A DNA stretch of 63,224 nucleotides, filler included, from Reticulomyxa filosa (taxonomy: Eukaryota > Protista > Foraminifera): the NCBI GenBank assembly GCA_000512085.1. It is 14 parts of 14 records of this genome, joined end to end, with 100 filler letters (N's around TTAATTAATTAA, not from the genome) between each part and the next. Parts side by side here need not be neighbours in the genome. Positions count along the whole stretch, not along the records: positions 26,165 to 44,149 come from ASPP01005226.1; 13 more parts are not named here. The stretch is one strand, 5' to 3'. The notes beneath the pieces were generated by a model. The model ran no database searches. It was given only the letters and a program-made list of their open reading frames with translations, and had not been told where the DNA came from. This document shows, piece after piece, positions 26,064-44,149 of this stretch (positions are counted from its first letter, which is position 1; the number at the start of each line of letters is the position of its first letter). The translations under genes were made by a program, and so were the position numbers.

Positions 26064-27055
26064 TNNNNNNNNNNNNNNNNNNNNNNNNNNNNNNNNNNNN
26101 NNNNNNNNTTAATTAATTAANNNNNNNNNNNNNNNNNNNNNNNNNNNNNNNNNNNNNNNNNNNNCTCTTCATATAGTGCCATTTAGGTGTGGCGGTTTTT
26201 TTTGCAATATACTGTAATCACAATCTCATTATTTGCATTATAATACGTATCAATTAGATCAACATCTAATGTCATTATAACGTGATAGTATAGTCATTGT
26301 CACATTTTTCATTAATTATTTCTTCAGAAATGAGTAGGATCAAAGGATATTTGTTGGAGATTATCGCAAATATTATCTTCAACATCACCACCCAAATCTA
26401 TCTTATTGATTGTATTTTTAAAAAGATAAGTTGATGTATGCTTACGTAGTAATTCACAGGCAATCTTTTTTTCCTGTTGTTTAGTTACTTACCTTCACAC
26501 TTAACAAGTTATTTTCATTTCGTTTATTTTTGTCTTTTTCAAATTGCCAAATGTTCAAACTATTCTCATTCTTTAGAACACAAATGAATTAAAGATTCAA
26601 AAATGTAAACAAAATATTAACAGTATGATTTTTGTTTGTGTGCTATTTATCAAATCAAGAAATTATCTTATTCAATCTTCACAAGTTTTTCAAAAATTTT
26701 TTTGTTAGTTAATAACAGTCCAACATAACAAATATTCTAATGATGTACTTTTTTGGTCATGCTGTAGTATGTGCATTTTGATTGTTGTCTGTTTTTGAAA
26801 TACTTTGTAGCATTTTTAGACTTATTTTTGAGAAAAAGTTTGCATATGCGTAAGTATTTTTTTTAATGGAATGAATAGGCTCTGAAAATAATTTCAGAAG
26901 ATTTTTTGTTATTAAAACGCCATGCTTTTACATTATTTTTCACAAAAGTGCTTTCAATGGTGGGTATTGTATTGCAAACGACTACTCATTTCTCAGTTCG
27001 TAAATTTGTTAATATTTGGGATGAAAGGAACGAGCCCAAAAAGTATTAAGTAAAG

Positions 27056-30000
27056 CTATGACACAAGACAAACTCCTATTTGTATTAAAGATAACAACAA
27101 AATAAGAATAAAACCAAAACTCCAGTTCCATTGCTTTTGTCTTCGATCCGAATCTTTGGCAAATTCAGCACCACATATCCAAAGTTTTTTGTCATTCCCC
27201 CATATCATAACTTCATGCATGTCATCTTCACCATTGATCTTTTCGTTAAAAGCCCAAAACTCTACGTTAACGCCTTCATCTACACAAAGTGATGTATGTC
27301 CTTTTGTTCGAATGCTGTTCAAAACTGAAAAAGTGAAATTGTCATCAAACCTGAAACACAATAAATTCTTTTGACATTTGTGAGCAAAGGTGGTTTTTTG
27401 TCAAATGCAATCCAATGAAATGGTTGCCAATGTCCAGTGTTGGATTCTTTGTTGATATGAGAGAAGCCAAATTCTAGACATGGGTGATGCATTTGCACAA
27501 AAGAGCTCTGTTTGTCACTGTGGCTTACATGCAAATAGACATTTGGAACTAAATCGGAGCGAATGCGTGTGTAAAAAGAGTCTTTTTGACTCCAATTGTC
27601 TGGTATTTGTTCTTTATAAATGTGGTAGATAAGACCGGGAATAAGCCTATTTTACAAAGACACTATCATTTCATTCTGCGTTGCACTGGGATAATTTAAA
27701 AAAAAAAGACAAGGTTTGTATATACCATAGTCGATCTTGTTTATTTGCAAGCACAATGATTTCATCGATAAAGTCCTCTGTCGGCTTTGAAAATCCCCAA
27801 AACTCAGTGTTGCATATATTCAATGACTTGAGGTCGTCACTTCGTCCGAAAATGGGTTTTTCATTTTTGGCAAACGCCACAAAGTGAAAAGGATAACACA
27901 GCGGATCATTTGTGGGACCATTGGAAAAGCCACTCTTAACAAAGGGTCGATCGATTTGAAGAAACGACTCTTTCTTTGTTGCGTTTTGAGTGACAAAAAA
28001 GTATGTATTGGGAATCAACCAATGAGTGACTTTTGTCCAAAATGTCTCTCGAATCCGAAACCCCCAAAAATTGGATGTGTCAGATCTCATGAAAAATAGC
28101 CCATTTTGTCCCTTGATCGTAAATCGCGCAGGCAAAACAAGAGGAGGCTCCCTTTATCAAAAGTTCAAAAAAAAAAAAAAATCAAAAATGTGCAATTTTC
28201 ATATGCAAGTCTCGAAGATGGACAAATAATGTAGACCTAACATAATAATGATTTCTTCCGTGACGCCGAATTCGGGATAAGGTTTATTGAATGCGTGAAA
28301 AGTAATTCCACTACATTCCTCGCTCAATACGATTTTCTTTAATTCGAATTCCTTGGTATTCGGCTCCACTGCAAAGGCGACAAACTGAAAATTAAACCAA
28401 TGTTTGTTACCTCCATCTGCGGGCTCGTCTCGATAACCGAACTTGTTCATTGGGGCATCTTTGTTTATAAATGATCGCCATTGCCTCTGCGTCACATAAT
28501 AGTTATGGGAATTACATAACGCTTTCCCACAGGACAAGGACGACGACGTAGCAGTATCTTGCTTTCGTTCGTTGGCCGACTCGCATTGTCCTTCCTTTTG
28601 AATAGTAGCGAGTCGGGCTTTCAACAGTCGTTTGAATTTGATTTGATGTGGCTCTTTGGGAATCAATCCTTTCAATATATCTGCGTAATGTTCATCCTCC
28701 TCGACAAACACATCCCAGTCATTAACGTCTGTCCATTGCTCTGTTGGATTGATACAACAGTGCGATCATAAATAACAGATTGTGTGTTATGTCATCCAAT
28801 AGTCAAAAAAGAACAAAGAACAGAGTTTATTGAGGACATGCCTCTTTCAAAATTTGGAATGTATTCATTCAATTCCCATTTTGTCAGGAGTTGTTTAAAC
28901 ACGGCTTGATCCAATCCTTCGGTGGTCGTGGTCTGGCCATTGCCTTCTTTTTCGTCATTGTTGTTGTCATCGGGGTTGCTGTCGTCACACATTTTGATAT
29001 CGCCAATCTTTGGTCGCACGTACGTTTGCGCGTATACGTAGGCGAGATTCTCTCCTGACTCTCTGTCCTCAAACAAACTCGCACGTGCACAAAAGTCATC
29101 CCATAGCTGTCTTCGAGAATAGAACACAGCATGTTGCAATTCAATTTCGCAAATAATTTTTGTGTCGGGCAGATAACAGTTGAGAATCATTTTTCTGTAA
29201 CCAAAGGGCACCGTTTTGAGCTCGAACTCGTCGCTTGCACACAAAATGCCTCCTTGTACATTGTTTGTGTCACACAACACAACAGATAACAGACAAGCAC
29301 GGCACAGATAATACATACATTCCATACCAATGTTGAATTGCTTGTCGTTCGTTAGTTGTTCAATGACGCCAAAGGCCTTGTACAGGTCGACAAAATTGTC
29401 AAATACAAAACAAGATCTTACAATATCTGTCATCTGTTTGTAATCGCCGTGGTAAATATAAAACGCTTCATAAAATGCTCTTTCAATATGTTTTGGTGAT
29501 ACTTGATAGTCAATGACATGTATCCCTTCTTTTTTGCATGCTTTGGCCACCGCGTCTGCGAACGCCTTGAACGGAGTGAAGTTCATGCTGATGATAAACA
29601 TCAAGTCACGGAATCTTGAAATCTATAGTCTCCATCCCCCATTCTTATTTGCATCTTCTTTTTTTTTTTATAAGATCAAAAACAATAGCACGTATACATA
29701 TATAAGTTTGAGATACGTAACATCAGATGTCGGCTTTGGGCTCACGTTTTCATATTGGGAAATACCCTTGGCATATTCGCGTCTTGCCTCTTCTTGGTCG
29801 CCTTTGATGGGCTCATAATGGTGGTCAAACAGGTTCTGCATTAACACAATCTTCTCCAAAAATGTTGACAGCTCGTTGATGTTGTTCAAGATTGACAATG
29901 CCAAGTTTCTTTCTTTTGTTATCACCACTTCTTTCACTTTACTCAAATGGGTTGTGTCTTGCTCTTTAACAATAACATCTATTTCAACCGTGGTACAACA

Positions 30001-30162
30001 AAAACTTTCACTTCTGCTTACACATAAATTATAAATATTCATCACATTAAACTTACCAACCCACTTGTCGTCTTCTTTTAGCCGAGACAACCTGTTCTCG
30101 AGTGTCTGAATCAATTTTATGACGCTTAATCCCTTTATATTATTTTCTGAAGTTTGAGCCAT
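27056..30162 (-). CDS. Multidomain protein: RelA/SpoT-like nucleotidyltransferase domain (divergent) + SAM-like domain + three repeats of an unknown domain
   Basis: PKHIERAF..YHGDYKQMTDIVRSCFVF..FGYRKMILN..ICEIELQH. SAM-like LLTKWELNEYIPNFE..WTDVNDWD..HQIKFKRLL. Three homologous C-terminal units. Confidence 0.65.
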
Positions 30163-31127
30163 TGAATTGTTCGTTATTCGTTGATGATTCTCAAAAAAAA
30201 ATGATATTCAGAAAAAATCATTGACGCAAAGTCCTTCCTGAAGTTTTCTTGCTGTCACCAGGCTCCGATATTTTGGGTGTAGATCAAGGTACTACCTGTA
30301 GAAGCAGATTCTGAAGAATTAAAAAATAAACAAATGTGTGCTTTTATGGATTTTTTTAAAAAAAAATTTTAAAATTTCTTTGTGTAATAAAAATTATAAT
30401 GTAAATGCAAAATCCTTAGATCAAAATCAAAAATTTTCAATGAAGCCTAAAAATGAAGAAAATGTCGTTGAAGCACTAGATATTGCAAAAAATTTATGAT
30501 GCCTTATTATTTAAATAATAATGAGAAATTGTTGTTAAAAAGAATGGAAAGCTGTTTGATGAATTTTAGAGTTGTCATACTATGTAATTTACACTACGCC
30601 TTAAATTAAATTGCAAAAAAATCAAGTAAATATACAATTGTTGAAAGATAATCAATTTTCATTGTTCTGTTTATTTAAAAGAGCAAATGAAATGTTTATT
30701 TGCTAACATATATATGGAAGTGTGAACTTTTTCATTCATTGCTAAAAATTTTTAGCAATGAATGAAAGATGTAATAGAAAAAGTTTAATGCATGTAAAAA
30801 ATAGCATAAATACAATATCAAAACAAAAACATGTTTAAAATTACATCATACATAGCCTTTGAATTATGTGTGGATTTTGAAGTTCTTAGTAATCGTATTT
30901 TCCATTATGTATGTAATCTTTTCTAGATTTGGACAATCACATTCTTTATTGTACAATTTCATAATTATAATATCTTGTGGAAATTATTTAAAATTATTTA
31001 GTTTAAAACTATGCAAATACATATATTTTAAAAAATTTTGAATCAAGTGTTAGTTTTTCATTGCGAAAACTGGTTGTTACAAGACCAACAACTTAAGAAG
31101 GGTCTTTTAGCGTTTTTTTAGGAATAG

Positions 31128-32701
<1,574 letters not shown>

Positions 32702-33253
32702 CCAATCAACTCTTTTTTTTTCTTCCACAAAAAATCGCTCTCTGTAGTGGAATGTACTCTCCAATGGCCAAAATTAGTGCTGTGCACTTTGGACATATTA
32801 GACTGTTTCAATCATTTTTGCAATTCAGGTTGCTTTTTTCGGGTCTAATTTGTAGGTAATCCTTTTTTTTAATTGTTGTTATTTCAGGTGCAATTGTTTT
32901 TGATACGATCAACCTTGATTTAGTTATGAACATCAATTAGCTTTCCTTCATTCGTGAACTTTTTGCAGCGTTTGTGTGTTTTTCATGTCGGAATTTGTTG
33001 TATTTTCATTAAATTGTAAATCCTTTGGCGGCATTTGAGGCAAGGAATATACAAAAAAACTGGATGGCATTACGAAGTACCATTCACCGTATGATCTATT
33101 TTAATTGTTTACTCCGTTATTGCACGTTTTGTAGTGGCGCAAAGAGCGAGTAGTTTTTAACAACAAAAAAATTCTTTTTCATTGGGGGAACCTATCACGG
33201 TTTGCGACGTCGAAAACTAAAAGAGAGTGGTTACTATTGCGATTGCTTTTGTA

Positions 33254-34370
33254 ATGGGAAGAACATGGTTTCAGCTATCATATGAAATATTGTCATGGAT
33301 TGGTGCAACTCTAATGCTCGTCTACGTGGGGCTGTACTTGTGGACACTGCGAAACAAGACGTCCGAATGGAAAGAAGTAACAAAAATAAAAATGAAAATA
33401 ATGGCAATTTGTACCAGTTTTTCATTTTTGTCCTACGGGGCATTGAATGTACTAGCAGCAGTCGAAATAATTCTTGAACGACAACATTGTACAACCCGAA
33501 CCGCGCTGGTTTCATTTACTTGGTTCTTTGGTCGATATTTATTGTACAATGTATTTCTGCTCCGTCTTGAAATTGTCTATTTCGGTTCTGTCTTTGGTTA
33601 TAGTGCCAAGTTTTTAAATTTCTATCGCCTATTTCTCTTTTTAGTGATGTTTATGGGATATATATTGACACTTATGTATTCATGGGGAAAGCGGACCAAT
33701 TTGAGTCAATGCACTTATCGCACGAATGTATACACTATTTCAACTGTCGTCATTTTTGACTTTACCGTCAGTATTTCTTGTTTGATCTTATTTTTGAGGT
33801 TTGTTTGTCATTTTTGTTTGCTTGGTACTTGTTTACTACGTACAAATACCACGCACAAAAAACAGACCTTTGCTGAAGTTATTGTCTAATGAGTGCAATC
33901 AATCTTTCCGTAGCTTGGCCATTAAATCCACGGTTCTCACCGGCATTGCCGTTACCTCAACTTTTATCACTTTTGGAATGATGGGGACGGGTTGGAATAT
34001 TTACCACGTTAATCGGATTGATGATGTTTCGTTCTTTTTTGTTTTTCTCCTTTACTTTATTTGTAATGGTATCCACATAGTGCTCGAAGGAGAGAAAAAA
34101 ACTTCGAGGGGTGTGGTGTCACATTTTAGGAGAACTAATGGACAACAACAAAACACATTTTCTTTCGTGGATAAAACATAGGTGGTAGAGTGTACGTGTT
34201 TGCTATTGATGGGCAGTTCATTCAATAGACAATATGATCTATTGTGTGGATGCTGGTCATATTGTTTCTCAGAGCAAGGCAAGCTTGTTAATTATATTGC
34301 CTCCAATGACACCACTCGAGTGACAAAAACAAAAAAGATTTTCATAACTCACCGGAACCTGTCGATGTAA
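33254..34370 (+). CDS. Seven-transmembrane (GPCR-like) membrane protein
   Basis: About seven hydrophobic segments across three exons, Cys before TM3 (QHCTT) and in the ECL2-like loop (SQCTY), basic loop before TM6 (RSLAIKST), C-terminal YDLLCGC. Introns near 33799-33865 and 34026-34181. Confidence 0.65.
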
Positions 34371-34723
34371 CGACAGAATGATCCATCTTTGTTGTCGCTA
34401 TTTGTGAGCGTCTCACTCTTTGTTTTCGAGTAAAATCACCCCTTTTCTGTTTTTTTTATGTATATTTTGCAGTTAGAGCAGTTTTACCGTCTTGTGCGGC
34501 TCGCTGCATTTTTTTTCCACAATTTGTTCAGAAAAAATTAGCTTTTCACAAATCTTTACTTTGTTATAACCACGGCATTTCTTTTGTATATATTTGTGAA
34601 CGTGATTACTTTTACTTTCGCATTTAATATATTAAACAAACACAGTGAAAAATGTTTCTGGACAAAATGTCGTCTAAGTACAAACAGGTTGTCAAAGTCT
34701 AACAAAAAAAGGGCAATCTATTA

Positions 34724-35086
34724 ATGTTTTTTATTTATTTCCCAATAGTACTGAACATCATTGCTTTTGTTGCTTTCGCAGCAGATAAAGTATTTGCGAA
34801 ATGCAAAAAGAGAAGAATTCCAGAAAAAACGTTGTTTAAATGGATATTTGTCGCGCCGTTTGGGTCTTTTTTGGGAATGATACTGTGTTGTCACAAGACA
34901 AAAAAATGTTCGTTTTGGGGTCGGATAATTGCAGCGCTGTTGATCCACTTGTATTTCTTTGAAGTATATGTAGTTCAAGTATATCACTTTGTTATTGATC
35001 CCTCTGGGACTCTATTTAATCGTGATAGCTTTAAAGACGTCACCGAAAAATTGGGCTCAGCTACAAAGGAACGGTATGAGCTATAA
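34724..35086 (+). CDS. DUF1294 (YsdA-like) small membrane protein
   Basis: NIIAFVAFAADK..AK...RRIPEKTL...G...GM....HKTKK.SF is the DUF1294 signature. Confidence 0.85.
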   Translation: MFFIYFPIVLNIIAFVAFAADKVFAKCKKRRIPEKTLFKWIFVAPFGSFLGMILCCHKTKKCSFWGRIIAALLIHLYFFEVYVVQVYHFVIDPSGTLFNRDSFKDVTEKLGSATKERYEL

Positions 35087-38000
35087 TTTAATTCTTTGAT
35101 GACAAATATGAAATATTTTGAAATTCTACTTGTAACCATAAACCAAAGGAGGTGAAGATAAGACAAAAATTTGAGATACATGTTATTTTATCTAAACAAA
35201 AAGTCATTTTGGCAAACAAAAAAAGTATATAATATAAGAAACAAATTTGAACTACTTACATTATTGTCTGCTAGCATAAGTGCATAACAATTGGCACAAT
35301 GTTATTGGATGAACTTGAGTAACAGCTTCTTCTAAACCAAAACACTATTTCACCACAATTAATACAAAAATAAAGATCTGCCTGATATCTAAAAAAACGT
35401 GATTTTTTGATTGTAAAGCTGACAAAAAATAATCTTGTTTTTACTACCCTGCGCACACTGAGAATAATTTGATTTCAATAATTATAATGAATAATAAACA
35501 CAAAAGCTTGTGTTATTAATACAAAGCAGGAAACAGTGTAAAATGTTGAAAATTTGTTGGAGTAAAGTTCATTTTGTCCCCTTTTTTTACATGAAGCAGT
35601 ATTAAAAAAAAAATGTTCTTTCATTTAACATAAGCTATTGACCAAGATATCAAATAGGACTCCTCTACTGTTCAAAATTAAAAGTTTTATTGAAGAACAG
35701 GAAAAACTTAAACTATAAGACGAAAAACTAGAAAAGAACAAAAAAAGGGACCAAGTAAATCATTGAATGAACATTTCAAGTAGTTGTTACAACAAAAGTA
35801 TATTGCGTATACCATTAGAATAGATCAACTATCTAGTTGGTTAATTTCAACTCTTTTATTAATCATTTACATCAGATGAAAAAGAAAAACGAACGTACAC
35901 GATATCAATTACAAATTGATTTTAAGTATTAATAAATCAAAAATGCAGTATTGTAAAAACAAATTTCAATTCAAAATGAAATGATGAAGTGATTTAGAAA
36001 AAAAAGAATATGTGTGACAATAAGTCACAAGCTAGGAGTGAAGTTTTGTGCTTTGTCTTTTGAATAAAGTAAAATAATAAATGCTGAATCTAAACCAAGT
36101 ATTACGCAAAGTTTAAGCTGATATCTTTTTTTTGTTTGAAACACAAGTCTTTTTTTTCTAAATATGCAAACGAATGAGTGAAAGAAATATAAAGAAAAAA
36201 CTCAAATAGATTATGACGTGTGTATATATGTGTAACTTGTTGAAATATGTGTATTGAACGATGCATATATATTAATATTGAAATACATAATAAAAGAAAG
36301 TAGGGCCATTATAACATCATATATCATTATATATGACAATATTAACAAATTCAGTACTAAAACATATACTATAATACATTAAAGTGGAAAGTTATACTAA
36401 ATTTTAATGACCAGTAGTGGAATGATAAAGTACTTTTTCAAATGAAGAAAAAAACTTGGTAATTTGCTTGATAGTATATGTGTGATCTCTTGTCATTGAA
36501 CTGAAATAACAGAAATATTCGAGAAAGTATGTCCAGCTGAAAAAAAAAAAATTAGTGAAGTAGCAATTTGATTAAAATGGAAATGACAAAAAACTTATTA
36601 ATAAACGCAAATGGCATCATTTAACTTTGCAACTGCGCAACTATTGATCGCACGAAGTAGCGAGTTGGTGAATTGTTCGATTAATTGACACAAAGATAAT
36701 AATCGTTTCAATTATTACACAAACCATGGCGAAATTAAAAGCGTATGACATGACAAAAATGATAAAAAAGATATTGAATAAGAAGATAACTTTGGGTTAT
36801 TAGTTTAAACGTGGCCACAGCCGACGTGTAGACTCGAAACAAGACTGGACGATAAGCATATATTCGTGCTAGCACATGATTGTGTCCAAATGAAGGAATA
36901 ATTGTATAATATAAACAAAATATCATCACAAAGTATGTCATGTATTAATTTTTTTTAAAGTTAATGACAAAATTTTTTTTAGTGTAGACTGTGGTAGTCA
37001 AAACAAAATATACGCTACATTGTAGGTAGATGTCTCATTGAAAACACATTGATGACATTTCTACTAGTAATATAGATGACATTGTGCCAGTGTGTATGCA
37101 AAAATGCAATAACAATGCGCTTAGTACTTAGATACACAAGACTAAATTCAACACATTGACCAACTAAACAACAAATTTTTTTGTGTATGTCTTTTTTACA
37201 TAATCTACAGCAGAATGCAAAAGAAAGTTAACACATAAAACGGTACCTATAAAGATGATTGATTTTCTTCATGAAAAGACAACATCCAGACCTAATTTTT
37301 TTTAAATATATACGAATATTGTAGTTTTTAAATTTGATTTTGATTTTTTATTAAGTCTTTACTAATTGTTTGAAAAATTTGAATCGAGTTAAAAAAACAA
37401 AAATAAGTGACAGTAAAGCAATTTATATGTTAATATTATAGTTTAAATGAAAAATTTTCAATTTTTTTTTTTTGTTGACTTTTTATGTTTTTTTACCATG
37501 CGTGTCAATTTTTTGGATTGTAATTTAAAGATACTGCAAATGCTAAAAGAACAACAATAATCAAAAATAAACACATAAAAACAGCCAAAAAACAAAAAAA
37601 CCGAAAAATTTTCAAAATAGCTTAAAATTTAAGCAATTCTTTCCTTTTACAATTTGAAAAATTTTTTTAAAATATTTTTTTATCACTTTATTGACTTAAT
37701 CATGTTCATTCTGTTTTGTTTAATCTACTTATTTGCCTCTTTGTATTTGTGCCATTTTGCGTTGTCTTGAAAAAAAGAATCAGTTTTTATTATTGTATAG
37801 CAATATTCATTGCCTTTTAGCATTTCATCACAATATTTCTTTATAAAATTGTACAACTAAATCATCATTTAATTTACAAGAAAGCCAACGCCTTTAGCAC
37901 TAAGACACGTACATACTATGATGACGTACCGCTAAACATTGACATTTATAAACATATACATCAATAATATTATGTCGTCCTTTTTTCCGCATATAGTAAA

Positions 38001-40755
38001 TTATATCACTTACATATAAGTTAACTTTTATTTCTTCCAAAAATATTAATTATATACAATCTAATTTTGTGTTCATTAATAAAATTAAGTGCTTTGCTAT
38101 GCCCTTTAGTTAGTTTTTGCTTTATCTTTTTTGCAATAGTATATAATCTATTCAACTTCAAGTCAAATAAAAAACTATTTCACTTTCGATACTTAATAGT
38201 CTTTTTAAATCTTTCAATGTATTAACAATGTAATGTTAAATCACAAAGTTCAAATATAAAAAAAAGGATCTTAATAAAGTAGCATTTTATGTTTACTGCT
38301 TTTTTTTTCAAAATACTGTATTAAAAAACCAAAATCATATTTAAAAACTACAATATTTGTATATATTTTTTAAAAGAATTATACCTAGATGTTGTCTTTT
38401 CATGAGGCAAATCAATTATATCTGTAATGTGATTTTTTTATGTTTCAACTTTATTTTGCATTCTGCTGAATATATCCAATATCACAAGATAATATACCAG
38501 AATAATAAGCATAAAGATATTTTCGATATTTCAACAATAGTAATATGTTTAGTTTAATTTCCTTTGCCTCCAACAAATATATAATATTCAGATTATTTGT
38601 AATCTTTCTATGTATTTCAGCGTTCAATTTTTCTTGTGTTTGCTAAATTTGAGGAGATTGCAATGTTCTTTTTTTTTCTTACTGTAAATGAATATACACA
38701 CTACAAACGTAAAACAAAAAACAACAATAATGGGCAATATTACCTTTTGATCTTTAATAGATTTTGATAATTATCGTTGTTGAACCATCTGACTTTGATG
38801 TAAAACACAGTTTCATCTAAATTTCGTCAAAATATCAAAATTTGAATTATAACGTCGAAATTGATAAATTCCATTGTCAATAATACAAAATCTATAAAAT
38901 TTGAGCTAAAATGTGCAAATCCAGTGAATTTGTAACAAAAATTTTTTGTTTCTTAGCCATTGAAGTACCATTTATTGGAATTAATTTGTCAATTTAGATT
39001 TAATATTGTTTGATATTACTTGCCAACACTCAGAATGACTCATATCGAATATCAATTAATCCTACGTAAATCTTCATTGTCATTTTAATTAACAGAACAA
39101 TATAATAATATTGGAACAATTCTAAATGTCTGGTTATATTTACGATAATCTTTGTCGAAAATGGTGAAGCTATGTTCATACAAACTTTTCCAATACGTTT
39201 ATTCTATTTTTTAATTACTTATAATTATTTGCGATTGCAAATAATAATGAGCAATTACGATATTCTATATGTCTCATATAACTAAAGATTAATCTCAAAA
39301 TCCATATAACGCAATAGACATATTCCAACTATCTGCAAAATAGTTCAATGCTTCGTTATAGTTGTTTTGGTTTAATAAAGCTTTAAAAGATAGTTTATAC
39401 AACAATGAAAACAATACGTGATAAACCCTGTTTTTTAAATAAAGTTTTTTCTAACGAATAGTTTTTTTAACAAAAATTTTTTAATAAAAAATAACATTCT
39501 ATGTCAATGACACATCAGCATTAAACAAGTAAATACTTGATTATTATTAAATTAAGTGCTAAATAATACTTTATATACTAAATTTAAATATAAACTGCGA
39601 AAACGCATCTTCAATTCTTATACATAGTCAATATTTTTTTTGTTTGCTTATATAATTTTTTTCTTAATATTTAATTTATTTGCAAAATATTCAAATGAAA
39701 TTCAGATTAATACTTCTTCATCAAATTTATGCATTTGATTAATAGTGTTTTCATTGAATGATATAATCATACAATAAATATTTTACTTGTTACAATAATT
39801 ATTTCAATAATAATATACTAAATGTGATTTTTATTAGTATGATCTACAAAATATTGGCATTACGATGTTTTGTCTTATATTCAAATTCACAAACTTATCT
39901 ATTTCTTTCAAATCTTCAATTCTTGCTTTTTCATTGAACTATTGCATTGCTAACATCGAGTCATATGAATATGTATTTATTATGTTATTGATTAGTTATT
40001 CTTTTTCTCGTAATATAATACTTACATGGCTTAAACTGTTTGTAATTCATTATTTAAAGCTTCATTTATTTTTTTAAATGCTTTTTCAAATTTTCATAAG
40101 CATGTCAAAACTTATATGTATTTATCATTTTTGCTTATTTAAAAATAGTAAAAATAAAAACTTTTGGTTTTTCATAAGTTGAATTATTGTTTCGTTTTCT
40201 ATTCAAACATAAATCAATTTTTTTAATTATACGTATGTTCGAAAAAAAGTTTTTCCTTTTAAAAATTTTTTTGGTGAATTTCATTGAAAGTTACCAATAA
40301 TAATTGATACAATCATACACTTGCACATCAGTCTCTTTCCGAATTTAATATATCAATATACATTATATCTTTTGGAATAACAGTAAATGTATTATTTCCA
40401 TTTCACACAATGAGCTTTTCAATTATTTTGTCTTATTGTACGTTCGTTCGGTTGTTGGTCTTTTTGTGTAAAAAATAAATATAACTTCGGTACAAACTAG
40501 ACATCACAAAATGAACACAGTTTACCTCAATTTCTGGACGAACTGACGGAATTTTTTTTGCTTCAATCATTTTAGATTGAACTTGTTTGAAAGAGTAGTT
40601 TTTTTTTCCTTTTTTTGAAGTTTGAAAAAAACTTAAATTCTGTAAAATATTGTTGGTTAAAAAATTTTAAATATGTACAAGAGAAATTAAATATTACAAT
40701 TTTTGTAAAAAAAAAAAGTTTTGGCAAGTGGAAAAAACACTACCCGACTAAAAAA

Positions 40756-42384
40756 ATGCAACACGATACAATCATTTGGAACGTGATAAAGCCAGGATCA
40801 GGAGGTTTTTGTTCCTTCCGACGTCGTTTACCGAATAATCCGGCGAAATTTTGTAAGAATCCCTATAATGTACTTGGTTTGTGTCATCCAGGAGCATGTC
40901 CGTTGGCGAACAGTCGTTACGCAACAGTGCGAGAAGTGAAAGGCGAATGTTATTTATACATGAAGACAATAGAACGAGCACATACACCAGCCAAGCTATG
41001 GGAGAAAGTGAAATTGTCAAAAGACTACATGAAGGCATTGAAACAAATTGACGAACATTTGATTTGGTGGCCGCAATGGATGATTCACAAATGCAAATTG
41101 CGACTAACCAAAATCCATCAATACTTAATCCGTTCAAGAAAATTGGCATTATCTTTAGAGTTTGCTTTTTTTTTTTTAAAAAAAAAAAACAAAACAATAA
41201 TAATAATAATAAATGTTACTTAAATAAAGTATTTTTTTAAATCAAATGAATAAACAGACCAAAAATGGTTCGCATTTGGAAACCATATGAACGACAACAA
41301 CAAGTCCGCGAAGAAAAGGCAGAAATTGCAGCAAAGATCACAAACGTGGTTAAACAGGAGTTAATGGATCGATTGCAAGATGGTGTGTATGAAGGTATTT
41401 ACAACTTCCCAAGCAAACAATACAATCAAATTTTGGAAGAGCAAGGTCTTCCTGACGAGGAAGACGCACAATCTGAATCAGACCTCGACTTTGATTTGGA
41501 CGAAAAGCAGCCAAACCAATCCATTACCCCAAAACAAAAGCAGTTGCATTTTTTATTTCAAATCAAAAAAAATAATAATAATAATTTTGTTTCAAGTTTT
41601 ATTGGAAAGGGGGGGGAGGGGAAGAAAGAAAAAAAAGGGGGTACGTATAATTTTTTTTTTTTTAAAAAAAAAAAAAGGCAAGAAAAAAAAAAGAAGTAGA
41701 AGTGGAGGAAGAAGTGATGCCAGAATTTGTTGCCGATTTTGATATGAGTGAAGAAGAAGATATTGAGGACATTGGAAATGCAGAGAAGAATTACGAGTAT
41801 GAATACGAATATGAAACTCCTCATCAACAAATGGCAATTAATAGCGCAAATGCCAAAGGGGGCGCCAAAGCCGCTGCCAACGTTGGCAACTCGAGTAGCA
41901 CTTACGGCAAACCAAAAACCAAACCCCTCTCTAAAAACTCACAAAACATGGAAAAGGATGCTATTAAACACAAGGCAAAAAAAAACAAACACGAAGAAGA
42001 AGAAAAAAAGAGGATGATGGTAATTATGGTGACGATGACGATGATAATGATGAAATTAATGGAAACGAAGAAGTCAATGACAATGAAACAGGAGAGGAAA
42101 TAATCACAGATGAACAAAAACTACGTGAGTCTTTATTGGGCATGATGCAAAGTTTTAACGATCAGCCAATGGAAGACATGAACGAGGATGATGAGGACAT
42201 GCACAACTCGAAAAAACCGGCCTCAAAAAAGGCTCGGTCGAGCAATTCCAAACATAAAGGCACAAAAAAACAAATGCCGAAAAATACCTCATCCAACTCA
42301 CAAAGAAACAAACATTTGAAAAAAAAAAATCGCCTTCCAAAAAAAAAGGCAAAGCTCAGATCGCTTATGATTGAAAACATTTAA
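40756..42384 (+). CDS. MAK16: MAK16 60S ribosome biogenesis factor
   Basis: [23 protein letters not shown]...[66 protein letters not shown], acidic tail with EYEYEYE. Confidence 0.96.
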
Positions 42385-42718
42385 CATTTTTATAGGAATA
42401 AATAGCCCCATCTTCCTCCAGTTGTTTCATCTTCTGATCCAATGTTTACAGTCTTTTTATTTTATTATTACCTCAAAGAGGTTGGATTTATTTTGATTTT
42501 TTAAATTTTTTGTACAATTGAGATGTGCATACACAGAACAGCAAATTTGTGCATTACTTTTTTTTGATTGCTTGCAATCATGTCAGCAAAAACAAAACAG
42601 ACTTTCTTCAACAACAAAAAAAAAAAAAACATGATTTGATTTGGTTTTGATTTATCCTTGTTTCAATTCAGCTTTTTTAGTATAGTTTTCAAAATGATTA
42701 AACAGTTTGTGTTTGTCA

Positions 42719-43215
42719 TCATCTGCGAAAAGGATCCAAAGTAGCTTTTCCTACCGTGGGCTTGCTAAAAAATATTGTGACGTAATAAACTTTTGTCTTT
42801 CGGTTTGTCTCTTTTGTTAACGTCACTGACTTGATGGTCATGTATTGGTTGCCATAGATGGGCTGCCAAGAATCACCAACAGTCACCGCACGCACTTTTC
42901 GTGGATGCAATTTTCTCAATTTTTGATCATATCGTAATTTGTCAAATAAATGCTGCGATATATCTTGTCCTACTTTTATATCTTGTGTCATTTGCTCCTT
43001 TCGAAACTTTTTTATTGCTGATTTCACAACTTCTTTGCATCTTTTTTCTACCTCTGCGCTGAACATTGGATTTGAAGCGCAGACAAAAATCTGTGAGCTC
43101 TGTTGACCAAAACAAAACAACATTCCAATATTACATAAGCAGTTACTCAACAAAACAAACATATCAATACATCTTTTTTATAATTCTCGTCTTCTCCGTC
43201 AAGTTCAAGAGCCAT
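42719..43215 (-). CDS. Small protein, possibly divergent dynein light chain LC8-like
   Basis: MALELDGEDENYKKD|SSQIFVCASNPM..EVVKSAIKKF..QDISQHLFDKL..VTVGDSW..VTIFFSK loosely follows the LC8 pattern. Confidence 0.35.
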
Positions 43216-44013
43216 TGTAACAATTTATTCCGTTAATGTGTCCTCAAAAAAAATTTAAAGAGGGTCTCGGCCCTTTTTACGATCTTGGCCGGCAAAACGT
43301 TGTTACTGCACATACGTGTTTTTTTTCAAGATGATAGATGACAGCAAAACACGTGTTTATTGCACAATTTGTTGCAAAATCATCATCTCCAGTCTGGTAA
43401 TGTGGCGAAGACGCAACGATTTGGTGTTAGAACAAAGAAAACTAGTGAGTTTTTTGTTAATAAAGTTAGCTCAGTTGACAATTTTCTTGCTCCATCCCAT
43501 CAATCTTGCAAAAAAAAAAAATTAGAAATTCGTGAGACATGTTTTATTCATCAGAACTCTTCGCAAAGAAAGGAGGTAAATTGTTTTTAATTTTTGTTGC
43601 TGACGTCCGTTTCTGTCGTTGAGGCACTTCAAAAACGAACAAACACAACTAACAAATCCATTAGCTCTGGCCAAACTTTGGCTAGCCGGTACAGTTTTCA
43701 AGAAACTGAATAAAAAGGCAATACTTGATTCGAGTATTGAATCGCTCTGGTAACATTTATGCGTTTCTGATCTTTGCAAAAAAAAAAAAAATTATTATTA
43801 TTTTTTTTTTGCAACTCCTAAATAGTGACGAAGTAAAAAATAATGAGTTATTAGCAATATCAATTTGTGGGATTTTGACATTAGGAATTGTTCGAATATA
43901 TGACAAAGGAATTTACTACTTATTATCCGATGCTTCGGATGTTAAGTGGAAAAAAACTACAACACAGCAAACAGACAAAAGCCAAAAACGCACGCGGGAA
44001 CACATACACAACC

Positions 44014-44094
44014 ATGTCAACAGGCAAAGACCAAGTTACTGCGAATGATGGTTCACAGCAAAATAGACCTGCCCAAAGACCAATTAAATGCACG
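44014..44094 (+). CDS. First exon of a possible Rho-family small GTPase
   Basis: MSTGKDQ...QRPIKCT followed by an intron/poly-T. IKCx precedes V(V)GDGAVGKT in Rho/Rac, but the P-loop is not in the contig. Confidence 0.3.
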
Positions 44095-44111
44095 GTTGGT
44101 TGGTCTGTTCT

Positions 44112-44149
<38 letters not shown>

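Follow-up and report, generated by a model that had tools for sequence, protein, structure and literature searches.

A RelA/SpoT-like synthetase domain with replaced ATP-site residues in a spliced, SAM-containing gene of the foraminifer Reticulomyxa filosa: a candidate pseudoenzyme

Introduction

Enzymes of the RelA/SpoT homologue (RSH) type make the alarmones of bacteria and plastids. A gene of the foraminifer Reticulomyxa filosa appears to encode a synthetase domain of this type in which residues expected at the active site have been replaced. This raises the question of whether the domain is a true relative of RSH synthetases and, if so, whether it is an enzyme with a changed substrate, a pseudoenzyme or a decaying copy. 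The gene lies on the minus strand of record ASPP01005226.1 (assembly GCA_000512085.1), which supplies positions 26,165 to 44,149 of the window, i.e., of the whole stretch of 63,224 nucleotides (nt) that was analyzed. All positions count along this window, and residues are numbered along the minus-strand open reading frame (ORF) 29604..28792 (270 codons).

An earlier note, made from the sequence alone, had placed a eukaryotic RelA/SpoT-like domain with substituted catalytic motifs at 28950-29600, and had offered two explanations, a changed substrate or a pseudoenzyme that senses or regulates active paralogs. The comparisons reported here lean toward the pseudoenzyme, because the equivalents of a Lys that contacts the ATP phosphates and of a His that contacts the ATP ribose have become Glu and Asp. 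An intact nuclear gene with 8 exons is present at this foraminiferal locus. With a probability that we place slightly above even, it encodes a fold-preserving, catalytically dead or crippled pseudoenzyme that would act through its SAM domain and C-terminal repeats.

The domain has the fold of RSH synthetases

The motifs PKHIERAFYEA, MTDIVRS, GGILCASDEF, FGYRKM and CEIELQH, on which the earlier note was built, were all found in the one minus-strand frame of ORF 29604..28792. A phmmer search with this ORF, exhaustive over 1.8 billion representative proteins, returned 85 protein clusters at E<=1e-3; for 13 clusters E was under 1e-30, and the best reached 1.7e-45. The motifs are therefore not a chance pattern. 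The family therefore comprises at least 85 clusters at 50% identity. This exon was aligned with 39 homologue segments (family alignment A1, 40 members).

The ORF itself matched no Pfam family; for RelA_SpoT (PF04607), it had no match even at E<=1 and stayed below the curated threshold. This would fit a superficial resemblance to RelA/SpoT, with the domain belonging to some other nucleotidyltransferase fold or to an unrelated protein. Such an explanation would also account for the search of the family sequence profile against the PDB, which gave a single weak match (8vx3, E 0.74), and for the occurrence of generic pol-beta-fold proteins in the structural list given below. Against it, the one PDB match is itself a small alarmone synthetase, and RelA_SpoT was the sole Pfam family matched by many members. 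Sub-threshold matches to it were obtained for 17 of the 40 members at E<=1 (best 7e-5), with every other family matched by three members at most; two full-length matches scored 16.8 and 18.9 bits against a cut-off of 27 bits.

In profile-profile comparison with hhalign, A1 matched E. coli RelA alone at E 1.3e-4 and a 20-sequence RelA-type alignment (A2) at E 2.5e-6 (probability 88.7%, 110 columns), with four motifs in order and in register. In these pairings, SPKHIERAFYEA of this gene was aligned to RPKHIYSIWRKM of E. coli RelA, the 'PKHI' of which is literally present in this gene, and the Asp strand was aligned to FDVRAVR, GYRK to GYQS, and EIELQ to EIQIR. The profile comparison that the earlier note had suggested was thus negative for Pfam RelA_SpoT on this protein and positive for the family profile against the RelA profile.

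An AlphaFold model calculated from A1 (40 sequences) had a predicted local distance difference test (pLDDT) score of 77.6; it includes, as a disordered loop, the 25 probably intron-derived residues described below. All of the 50 best Foldseek matches were RSH synthetases (E 1e-5 to 3e-3). VIA-align superposed the model on Bacillus subtilis SAS1 (5ded) with Z 16.4 and a root-mean-square deviation (rmsd) of 2.4 A over 142 residues. Its top 29 PDB entries were all RSH proteins (SAS1/2, RelP, Rel, RelA, SpoT, Tas1, CapRel and SaEAS; Z 10-16.4), well clear of other nucleotidyltransferases; below them, Z dropped under 10, with RsfS and Pol X proteins at Z 8-10. The Atlas fold search returned bacterial RelA_SpoT clusters together with eukaryotic clusters, among which diatoms were the commonest taxon. 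Because Pfam on the members, the profile-profile match, the structure and the Atlas fold search agree, the fold and the RSH superfamily assignment of the domain are solid, and we regard a superficial resemblance as very improbable. Both the RelA/SpoT-like assignment and the structural match anticipated by the earlier note were borne out in this way.

Conserved polar positions are replaced in this copy

A column of A1 was treated as conserved when at least 85% of the 39 homologues agreed, which gave 44 columns. This copy deviates at 15 of them, compared to a median of 1 among the homologues; the next worst deviate at 11 and 7. After this copy and P0026 (see below), P0073 is a third strongly divergent member, with 11 deviations. 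Seven of the changes affect residues shared by every one of the 39 homologues (K46E, S65C, R122C, K124S, Q155E, K165R and R176S), and the other eight are L62V, R126E, D138K, H157Q, S168W, H169D, Y172C and K173A. Altered positions make up 13 of the 23 conserved polar or charged columns, but only 2 of the 21 conserved hydrophobic or Gly/Ala columns (Fisher p 0.0014). The median identity of this copy to the family is 37%, compared to 44% among the others, and its terminal branch is among the longest (1.52; median 0.4).

The changes affect several motifs in turn. The basic donor-ATP motif R-x-K-x3-S-x3-K-x2-R, both lysines of which are present in the family consensus, reads S36-x-K38-x3-R42-x3-E46-x2-Y49 in this copy, so that only the first Lys remains; K46 is invariant in the 39 homologues. 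In the strand before the GY loop, R122 and K124 are likewise invariant, and R126 is found in 36 of 39; all are replaced here. Together with K46E, K173A and R176S, these changes (R122C, K124S, R126E) agree with the statement of the earlier note that positions expected to be basic are neutral or acidic. The note had also reported that ExQ is ExE. This Gln (Q155) occurs in 39 of 39 homologues and is invariant in the RelA alignment A2 as well, and it is Glu in this copy. H169D sits 16 residues past the catalytic Glu, at a position that is His in 37 of 39 homologues. Of note, the metagenomic homologue P0026 (JGI) carries H169D independently, with R126L, D138H and K173E, so that degenerate copies may recur within the family.

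Not every departure is particular to this copy. Of the motif G-Y-x-S-x-H and its preceding P-K, this copy keeps the G-Y, has Lys for the Ser (where the family has Asp), carries a hydrophobic residue in place of the His and is without the P-K lysine. The family as a whole departs from bacterial RSH enzymes by lacking the P-K lysine and the GYxSxH His and by having Asp at the Ser position. The claim of substituted catalytic motifs therefore holds for the copy-specific changes, whereas GYR in place of GYxSxH is a family trait and not a defect of this copy. By alignment, the catalytic-site motifs of this copy differ from those of its own family as well as from those of bacterial RSH enzymes. The residues retained are K38, R42, D60, R63, G135-Y136-R137, N142 and E153, and the comparison with the 39 homologues confirmed the Asp, the GYR and the Glu that had been noted as remaining.

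Several replaced positions align with a characterized ATP site

The nucleotide site has been described for Staphylococcus aureus RelP with AMPCPP, and its residues were reported to be strictly conserved in RelP and RelQ (PMC5794853). Equivalent positions are listed in Table 1. They were assigned by sequence alignment, from the hhalign registers, the identical spacing within motifs and the Glu-to-His distance seen with SaEAS, E(+16)H. The Glu-to-His spacing of 16 is the same in RelP (Glu174/His190) and in the SaEAS hidden Markov model (HMM) alignment. Both acidic Mg2+ ligand positions are occupied, with D60 and E153, each invariant in the family, aligned to the Asp (FDVRAVR) and the Glu (EIQIRT) of RelA.

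Table 1. Residues of the S. aureus RelP nucleotide site (PMC5794853) and their equivalents by sequence alignment
RelP residue	Role in RelP	Family	This copy
Arg78	adenine stacking (with Arg112)	often K or R (variable)	S36
Lys80	ATP phosphates	K38	K38
Ser84	alpha-phosphate	R42	R42
Lys88	ATP phosphates	K46	E46
Arg91	ATP phosphates	Y49	Y49
Asp107	Mg2+	D60	D60
Arg112	adenine stacking (with Arg78)	S65	C65
Glu174	Mg2+	E153	E153
His190	ATP ribose	H169	D169

Canonical members of the family would accordingly retain the core of the donor-ATP site, while this copy appears to lack the equivalents of Lys88, His190 and the ExQ Gln. The most economical reading of these changes is that productive ATP binding has been lost. 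If so, the copy would no longer bind or turn over ATP efficiently and would persist as a pseudoenzyme with its fold under selection. In that case, the folded domain, the SAM domain and the C-terminal repeats could have a scaffolding, sensing or regulatory role, and the SAM domain could mediate association with active paralogues.

Several points weigh against this interpretation. Retention of D60, E153, K38, R42, R63, G-Y-R and N142 would be unexpected if catalysis were fully dispensable, and K46E and D138K together amount to a reciprocal exchange of charges, which may be compensatory and not destructive. The activity even of the 'canonical' members is a prediction from sequence, and residues were equated through the alignment of profiles and the spacing of motifs. 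In addition, no close orthologue that would allow an estimate of the ratio of nonsynonymous to synonymous substitutions (dN/dS) was found in metagenome contigs scanned with exon 4 or among the representative proteins, where the best match was 46% identical.

The first two of these points would be explained by an active enzyme with changed chemistry, i.e., one that binds Mg2+ and a nucleotide with a different donor, acceptor or binding mode and forms a product other than (p)ppGpp. The constrained hydrophobic core would suit such an enzyme. Substrate drift is also plausible, as the family already departs from bacterial enzymes at the acceptor motifs (no PK lysine, GYRD), and acceptors vary among RSH enzymes: (p)ppApp is formed by SaEAS and Tas1-type enzymes (PMC12691689), and tRNA is reported as the acceptor of CapRel and FaRel2. 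An active enzyme is difficult to reconcile with seven invariant positions changed at once and with the replacements at the sites of phosphate contact (Lys to Glu) and ribose contact (His to Asp). With a net six basic side chains fewer around the polyphosphate site, any nucleoside triphosphate donor becomes unlikely. Moreover, the searches of representative proteins and metagenome contigs yielded no orthologue with the same new residues and hence no indication that an alternative active site is conserved. We consider changed chemistry unlikely, although worth keeping in mind.

The gene is intact and spliced

The gene model comprises 8 exons with 2424 coding nt, or about 807 codons (Table 2). 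Every exon was read in its own frame, and phases, stops and divisibility by 3 were tested. The model contained no internal stops, all splice phases were compatible and the total length was divisible by 3. Exon GC is 0.40, compared to 0.26-0.39 for the introns, which are 50-208 nt long; GC of the whole part from this record, which carries further spliced genes, is 32%. Exons 2-4 are backed by homologue alignments, and exons 5-8 were deduced from reading frames and internal repeats only.

Table 2. Features of the RSH-like gene and of the neighbouring sequence, in window positions
Feature	Position	Strand	Remarks
Whole gene model	27056..30162	-	ATG at 30162, TAG at 27058..27056
Exon 1	30057..30162	-	start codon; hydrophilic N-terminus, no obvious targeting peptide; donor GTAAGT
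Exon 2	29722..29978	-	conserved helical region upstream of the RSH-like domain
Exon 3	29328..29622	-	N-terminal half of the RSH-like domain, with helix 1, strand 1, PKHIERAFYEA helix and MTDIVRS strand (Asp60)
Donor-ATP motif	29467..29493	-	K38 kept (29493..29491), R42 kept, K46 replaced by Glu (29469..29467)
Asp60, inferred Mg2+ ligand	29425..29427	-	kept; invariant in the family; aligned to the Asp of the RelA FDVRAVR strand
Probable in-frame intron	29253..29327	-	75 nt, GTATGG...ACAAG, GT..AG; inside ORF 29604..28792
Exon 4	28842..29252	-	C-terminal half of the RSH-like domain, with GGILCASDEF, FGYRKM, CEIELQH and degenerate final helices; acidic Asn/Asp-rich linker; start of SAM
Lost basic cluster, strand before the GY loop	29227..29241	-	family R-x-K-D-R; C-A-S-D-E in this copy
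G135-Y136-R137-K138	29191..29202	-	family GYRD; bacterial GYxS
E153-I-E155-L-Q157	29134..29148	-	family E-I-Q-L-H; bacterial E-I-Q-I-R; Glu ligand kept, Gln replaced by Glu
Degenerate helix	29077..29103	-	family S-H-x-x-Y-K-x-x-R; W-D-D-F-C-A-R-A-S in this copy
SAM domain	28600..28905	-	interrupted by intron 4; halves aligned to the SAM_1-positive region of P0006 and relatives
Intron 4	28741..28841	-	101 nt, GC..AG (GCATGT...CAACAG); splits the SAM domain
Exon 5	28224..28740	-	second half of SAM, linker, repeat 1 of the beta-rich module; one uninterrupted frame
Repeat region	27056..28480	-	three copies, about 80-130 residues, motifs like 'HWFxFxFVAFA' and 'EFWGF...EIIV'
Exon 6	27726..28151	-	repeat 2
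Exon 7 (tentative)	27351..27517	-	first half of repeat 3; frame and phase consistent
Exon 8	27056..27300	-	second half of repeat 3 and hydrophobic C-terminal stretch before the stop
Hydrophobic C-terminal stretch	27118..27062	-	about 19 residues, read from the sequence
6-phosphofructo-2-kinase/fructose-2,6-bisphosphatase	31140..32701	+	spliced; Pfam 6PF2K, His_Phos_1; divergent, about 1 kb upstream of the RSH-like gene start
Two overlapping long ORFs	33227..34181	+	very hydrophobic, multi-pass-membrane-like; no Pfam match
Long intergenic/non-coding stretch	35200..40600	both	about 5.4 kb, no ORF >70 codons; between the DUF1294 gene and MAK16
Rad21/Rec8 N-terminal domain ORF	43725..44048	+	domain match, E 3.4e-6; near the right edge of the part

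At the 5' side, tblastn alignments of many homologues begin at about 29982, and the junction that follows exon 2 ('...PKPTSD / ISRFRDLMF') gives the same length as in P0002. The interval 28950-29600 of the earlier note spans the RSH-like domain, but it includes a 75-nt segment that is probably an intron that stays open and not a part of the domain. This segment was read as an intron because it is in frame, has GT..AG borders, is missing from all 39 aligned homologues and coincides with pLDDT <50. It corresponds to ORF residues 93-117; the alignments of nearly all 85 homologues are broken in two, leaving out query residues of about 89-115, and the low pLDDT values lie at residues 92-112. A mechanical ORF call passes through the segment and adds 25 Cys/Leu-rich residues to the domain. 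As the GC of the segment (0.39) resembles that of exons more than that of introns, retention of this intron could conceivably yield an isoform with an insertion.

The splice junctions downstream were chosen on phase. For intron 4, the GC..AG junction is the sole phase-compatible one and gives NFER-E-QW, which has the same length as KMKDEGW of the homologues. Exon 7 was recognized by eye from the motif GF-S...HW-x-F-x-W-IAF that it shares with repeats 1 and 2, and an alternative splice that omits this exon is also phase-compatible. A frameshift between the halves of repeat 3 was considered and rejected as unneeded, as a 50-nt GT..AG intron brings the frame back.

These results bear on the proposal that the copy is decaying, i.e., that it is a recently inactivated or unexpressed paralogue that is turning into a pseudogene and has no function of its own. 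Of the 40 members, this copy has degenerated furthest, and it sits on one of the longest terminal branches, as expected of such a paralogue; no orthologue was found in the 1.8 billion representative proteins or in metagenome contigs. Its 3' exons were modelled without outside support, and one of its introns needs a GC donor. Decay is nevertheless hard to square with 2424 coding nt in 8 exons that contain neither stop nor frameshift, when a random codon would be a stop in about 7-8% of cases (estimated for 32% GC). Core positions have largely been spared, with 2 of 21 changed compared to 13 of 23 polar positions (p 0.0014). Both the SAM domain and the internal repeats can still be recognized, and exon GC remains above intron GC. 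We therefore judge decay improbable. Intactness of the reading frame and sparing of the core are what the pseudoenzyme interpretation would lead one to expect. The earlier description of a spliced, apparently non-organellar gene is upheld by the 8-exon model and by the nuclear housekeeping genes that adjoin it.

Domain layout of the protein

The protein consists, in this order, of a helical N-terminal region, the RSH-like domain, an acidic linker, a SAM domain, three beta-rich repeats and a hydrophobic C-terminal tail. When searched exon by exon with Pfam, neither of the intron-split SAM halves gave a SAM_1 or SAM_2 match. Both pieces nevertheless align, in order and with no conflict in length, to the SAM_1 region of P0006 (E 9e-6 in P0006) and to four relatives, and it is on this alignment to a SAM_1-positive region that the description as a SAM-containing protein now stands. 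No HD, TGS or ACT domain was found by Pfam in the four largest exon ORFs of the gene or in 30 homologues, as the earlier reading had it.

The C-terminal repeats are apparently all-beta. Repeat 1 shares 32% identity with repeat 2 over 79 residues (E 3e-5), and repeat 2 matches exon 8, i.e., repeat 3, at E 4e-4. The repeats had no Pfam match, the Atlas feature search for them was blank, and they showed no similarity to the TLDc region of P0005. An AlphaFold model of exon 6 from the single sequence was unusable (pLDDT 34.7). The repeats hold the place at which SAM-clade relatives have lectin domains (galectin, AbfB or C-type-lectin-like) and at which P0005 has TLDc. The hydrophobic tail that ends the protein is a possible tail anchor.

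A foraminiferal family with many fusions

The named members of the family were all derived from transcriptomes of Foraminifera, namely Ammonia, Nonionella stella, Bolivina argentea and Elphidium margaritaceum, and the rest are nameless metagenome sequences. A motif-based scan of genome contigs with the family alignment revealed no bacterial or archaeal relatives, and in the literature we found no description of RelA/SpoT or ppGpp in Foraminifera or Reticulomyxa, and nothing relevant on RSH proteins combined with SAM and effector domains. The family consensus contains the basic helix K-x-I-E-R-A-F-Y-K, the strand T-D-x-L-R and I-L-R-V-K-D-R-F, followed by P-F-G-Y-R-D-L-L-I-N, C-E-I-Q-L-H-H and S-H-x-x-Y-K-K-A-R-L-F. 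Because the ATP and Mg2+ residues of bacterial small alarmone synthetases are retained, typical members are probably ATP-dependent pyrophosphokinases.

Fusions were recorded by Pfam in the 30 homologues scanned. They include ubiquitin with or without Hint, WW, UBA, C1/ZZ, kinesin with EF-hands, ankyrin and choline-transporter-like membrane domains. In several members, ubiquitin is N-terminal and precedes the RSH-like domain (P0009, P0011, P0014 and P0016), and P0011 also has a Hint/intein-like module. Kinesin with EF-hands is fused in P0024 and P0061, and choline-transporter-like membrane domains are fused in P0041, P0050, P0062, P0064 and P0067.

This gene has the same layout of N-terminal helical region, RSH-like domain and SAM as the clade nearest to it, where 'nearest' is by tree path length and the placement of the gene in the tree is not firm. 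In that clade, SAM is followed by a variable module, namely galectin (P0007), AbfB (P0010) or C-type-lectin-like/DUF7495 (P0022); the TLDc of P0005 occupies the same position, but P0005 sits in another clade. By analogy, a layout of effector-like enzyme, oligomerization domain and interchangeable ligand-binding domain resembles innate-immune or cell-fate switches.

Relation to known systems

The bacterial small alarmone synthetases RelQ/SAS1 and RelP/SAS2 have the same fold and secondary-structure order as this domain (Z 15-16.4, rmsd 2.4-3.6 A over 142-154 residues). Like this gene, they have a single synthetase domain without HD, TGS or ACT, and the order of motifs is the same: basic helix, Asp strand, GY loop, ExQ strand and His helix. 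The foraminiferal consensus retains the equivalents of Lys80, Lys88, Asp107, Glu174 and His190. In contrast, identity to these enzymes is about 10-15%, under the Pfam threshold, and this protein is eukaryotic, spliced and multidomain. The family further differs from RelQ and RelP by Arg for the Ser of RxKxxxS, Tyr for Arg91 and GYRD for GYxSxH.

SaEAS (8vx3) of Streptomyces albidoflavus is an exported, promiscuous (p)ppApp/(p)ppGpp synthetase (PMC12691689). It has the spacing E-x-Q-x-H ... H(+16)-x-x-Y(+19)-x-x-x-R-L in common with the foraminiferal consensus, although its sequence match to the family profile is weak, as given above. SaEAS and the Tas1/Apk1 (p)ppApp toxin domain (6ox6) were structural matches at Z 12.8 and 12.2. 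Both are single-domain enzymes that bacteria secrete or inject, and their turnover is very high (PMC12691689). Unlike SaEAS, this protein has no visible signal peptide, and the His, Tyr and Arg of the helix concerned are gone from this copy.

Outside plastids, the synthetase-type RSH proteins known from eukaryotes amount to no more than a few sporadically occurring divRel genes, i.e., divergent synthetase-only RSH of Dictyostelium, some Ascomycota/few fungi, and diatoms (Atkinson et al. 2011, PMC3153485). Like the foraminiferal family, divRel stands apart from the plastid RSH1-4 and Mesh1 (PMC3153485). Standard RSH profiles had served to detect the divRel genes, the origin of which was ascribed to sporadic gene transfer (PMC3153485). 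As described there, they differ from the foraminiferal family, which is a large expansion (at least 85 clusters) fused to SAM, ubiquitin, Hint, WW, UBA, C1/ZZ, kinesin with EF-hand, choline-transporter-like and lectin domains. Long RSH proteins (RelA, SpoT and Rel; plant RSH1-4) have a homologous synthetase domain, as shown by the hhalign match to RelA (E 2.5e-6) and by Z 13-16 to Rel/RelA structures. Unlike them, this gene lacks HD hydrolase, TGS, helical/ZFD and ACT/RRM domains, and it bears no sign of ribosome association or plastid targeting.

From these comparisons, the family appears to be a new, expanded, multidomain eukaryotic RSH subfamily that, among named sequences, is seen only in Foraminifera. 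It would add to the sporadic divRel genes a family, below the Pfam threshold and with all named members foraminiferal, in which the synthetase domain is fused to signalling, ubiquitin, motor, transporter and lectin modules. These fusions suggest that pyrophosphokinase chemistry has been recruited into eukaryotic cytosolic signalling or defence. In this copy, the fold is conserved and ATP-site residues are selectively replaced; a predicted pseudoenzyme of this kind offers a ready negative control for canonical members. If the copy is merely decaying, the gene is ordinary and the family still deserves description.

A broader scheme can be put forward as speculation, and we rate it as doubtful. 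Foraminifera may have a large cytosolic family of RSH-type pyrophosphokinases built like innate-immune or cell-fate switches, with a synthetase or toxin-type effector closest in sequence to the promiscuous (p)ppApp/(p)ppGpp synthetases, SAM oligomerization and interchangeable ligand-binding C-termini (galectin, AbfB, C-type-lectin-like, TLDc or repeats). In such a scheme, this gene would encode a catalytically inactive decoy or regulator that joins active paralogues in assemblies formed by SAM. If true, a eukaryote would possess signalling of the alarmone type, or a defence system that depletes ATP, into which a pseudoenzyme is built as a brake.

Neighbouring sequence

The same part of the window carries spliced genes for 6-phosphofructo-2-kinase/fructose-2,6-bisphosphatase (PFK-2/FBPase-2), a DUF1294 protein, MAK16 and a Rad21/Rec8-like N-terminus. 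An Rfam search across the part gave no match, including in the long non-coding stretch, and tandem repeats were trivial; the sole tandem repeat of that stretch is short and AT-rich (39430..39490). MAK16 shares 76% identity with MAK16 of the foraminifera Bolivina, Nonionella and Globobulimina, more than with that of any other eukaryote, and the MAK16 exon is 93% identical to a JGI metagenome protein (P0090). A close relative of R. filosa may co-occur with expressed canonical paralogues. P0090 and P0001, a canonical family member on an intron-free contig, come from consecutively numbered JGI samples (3300030741 and 3300030740; L004 and L003).

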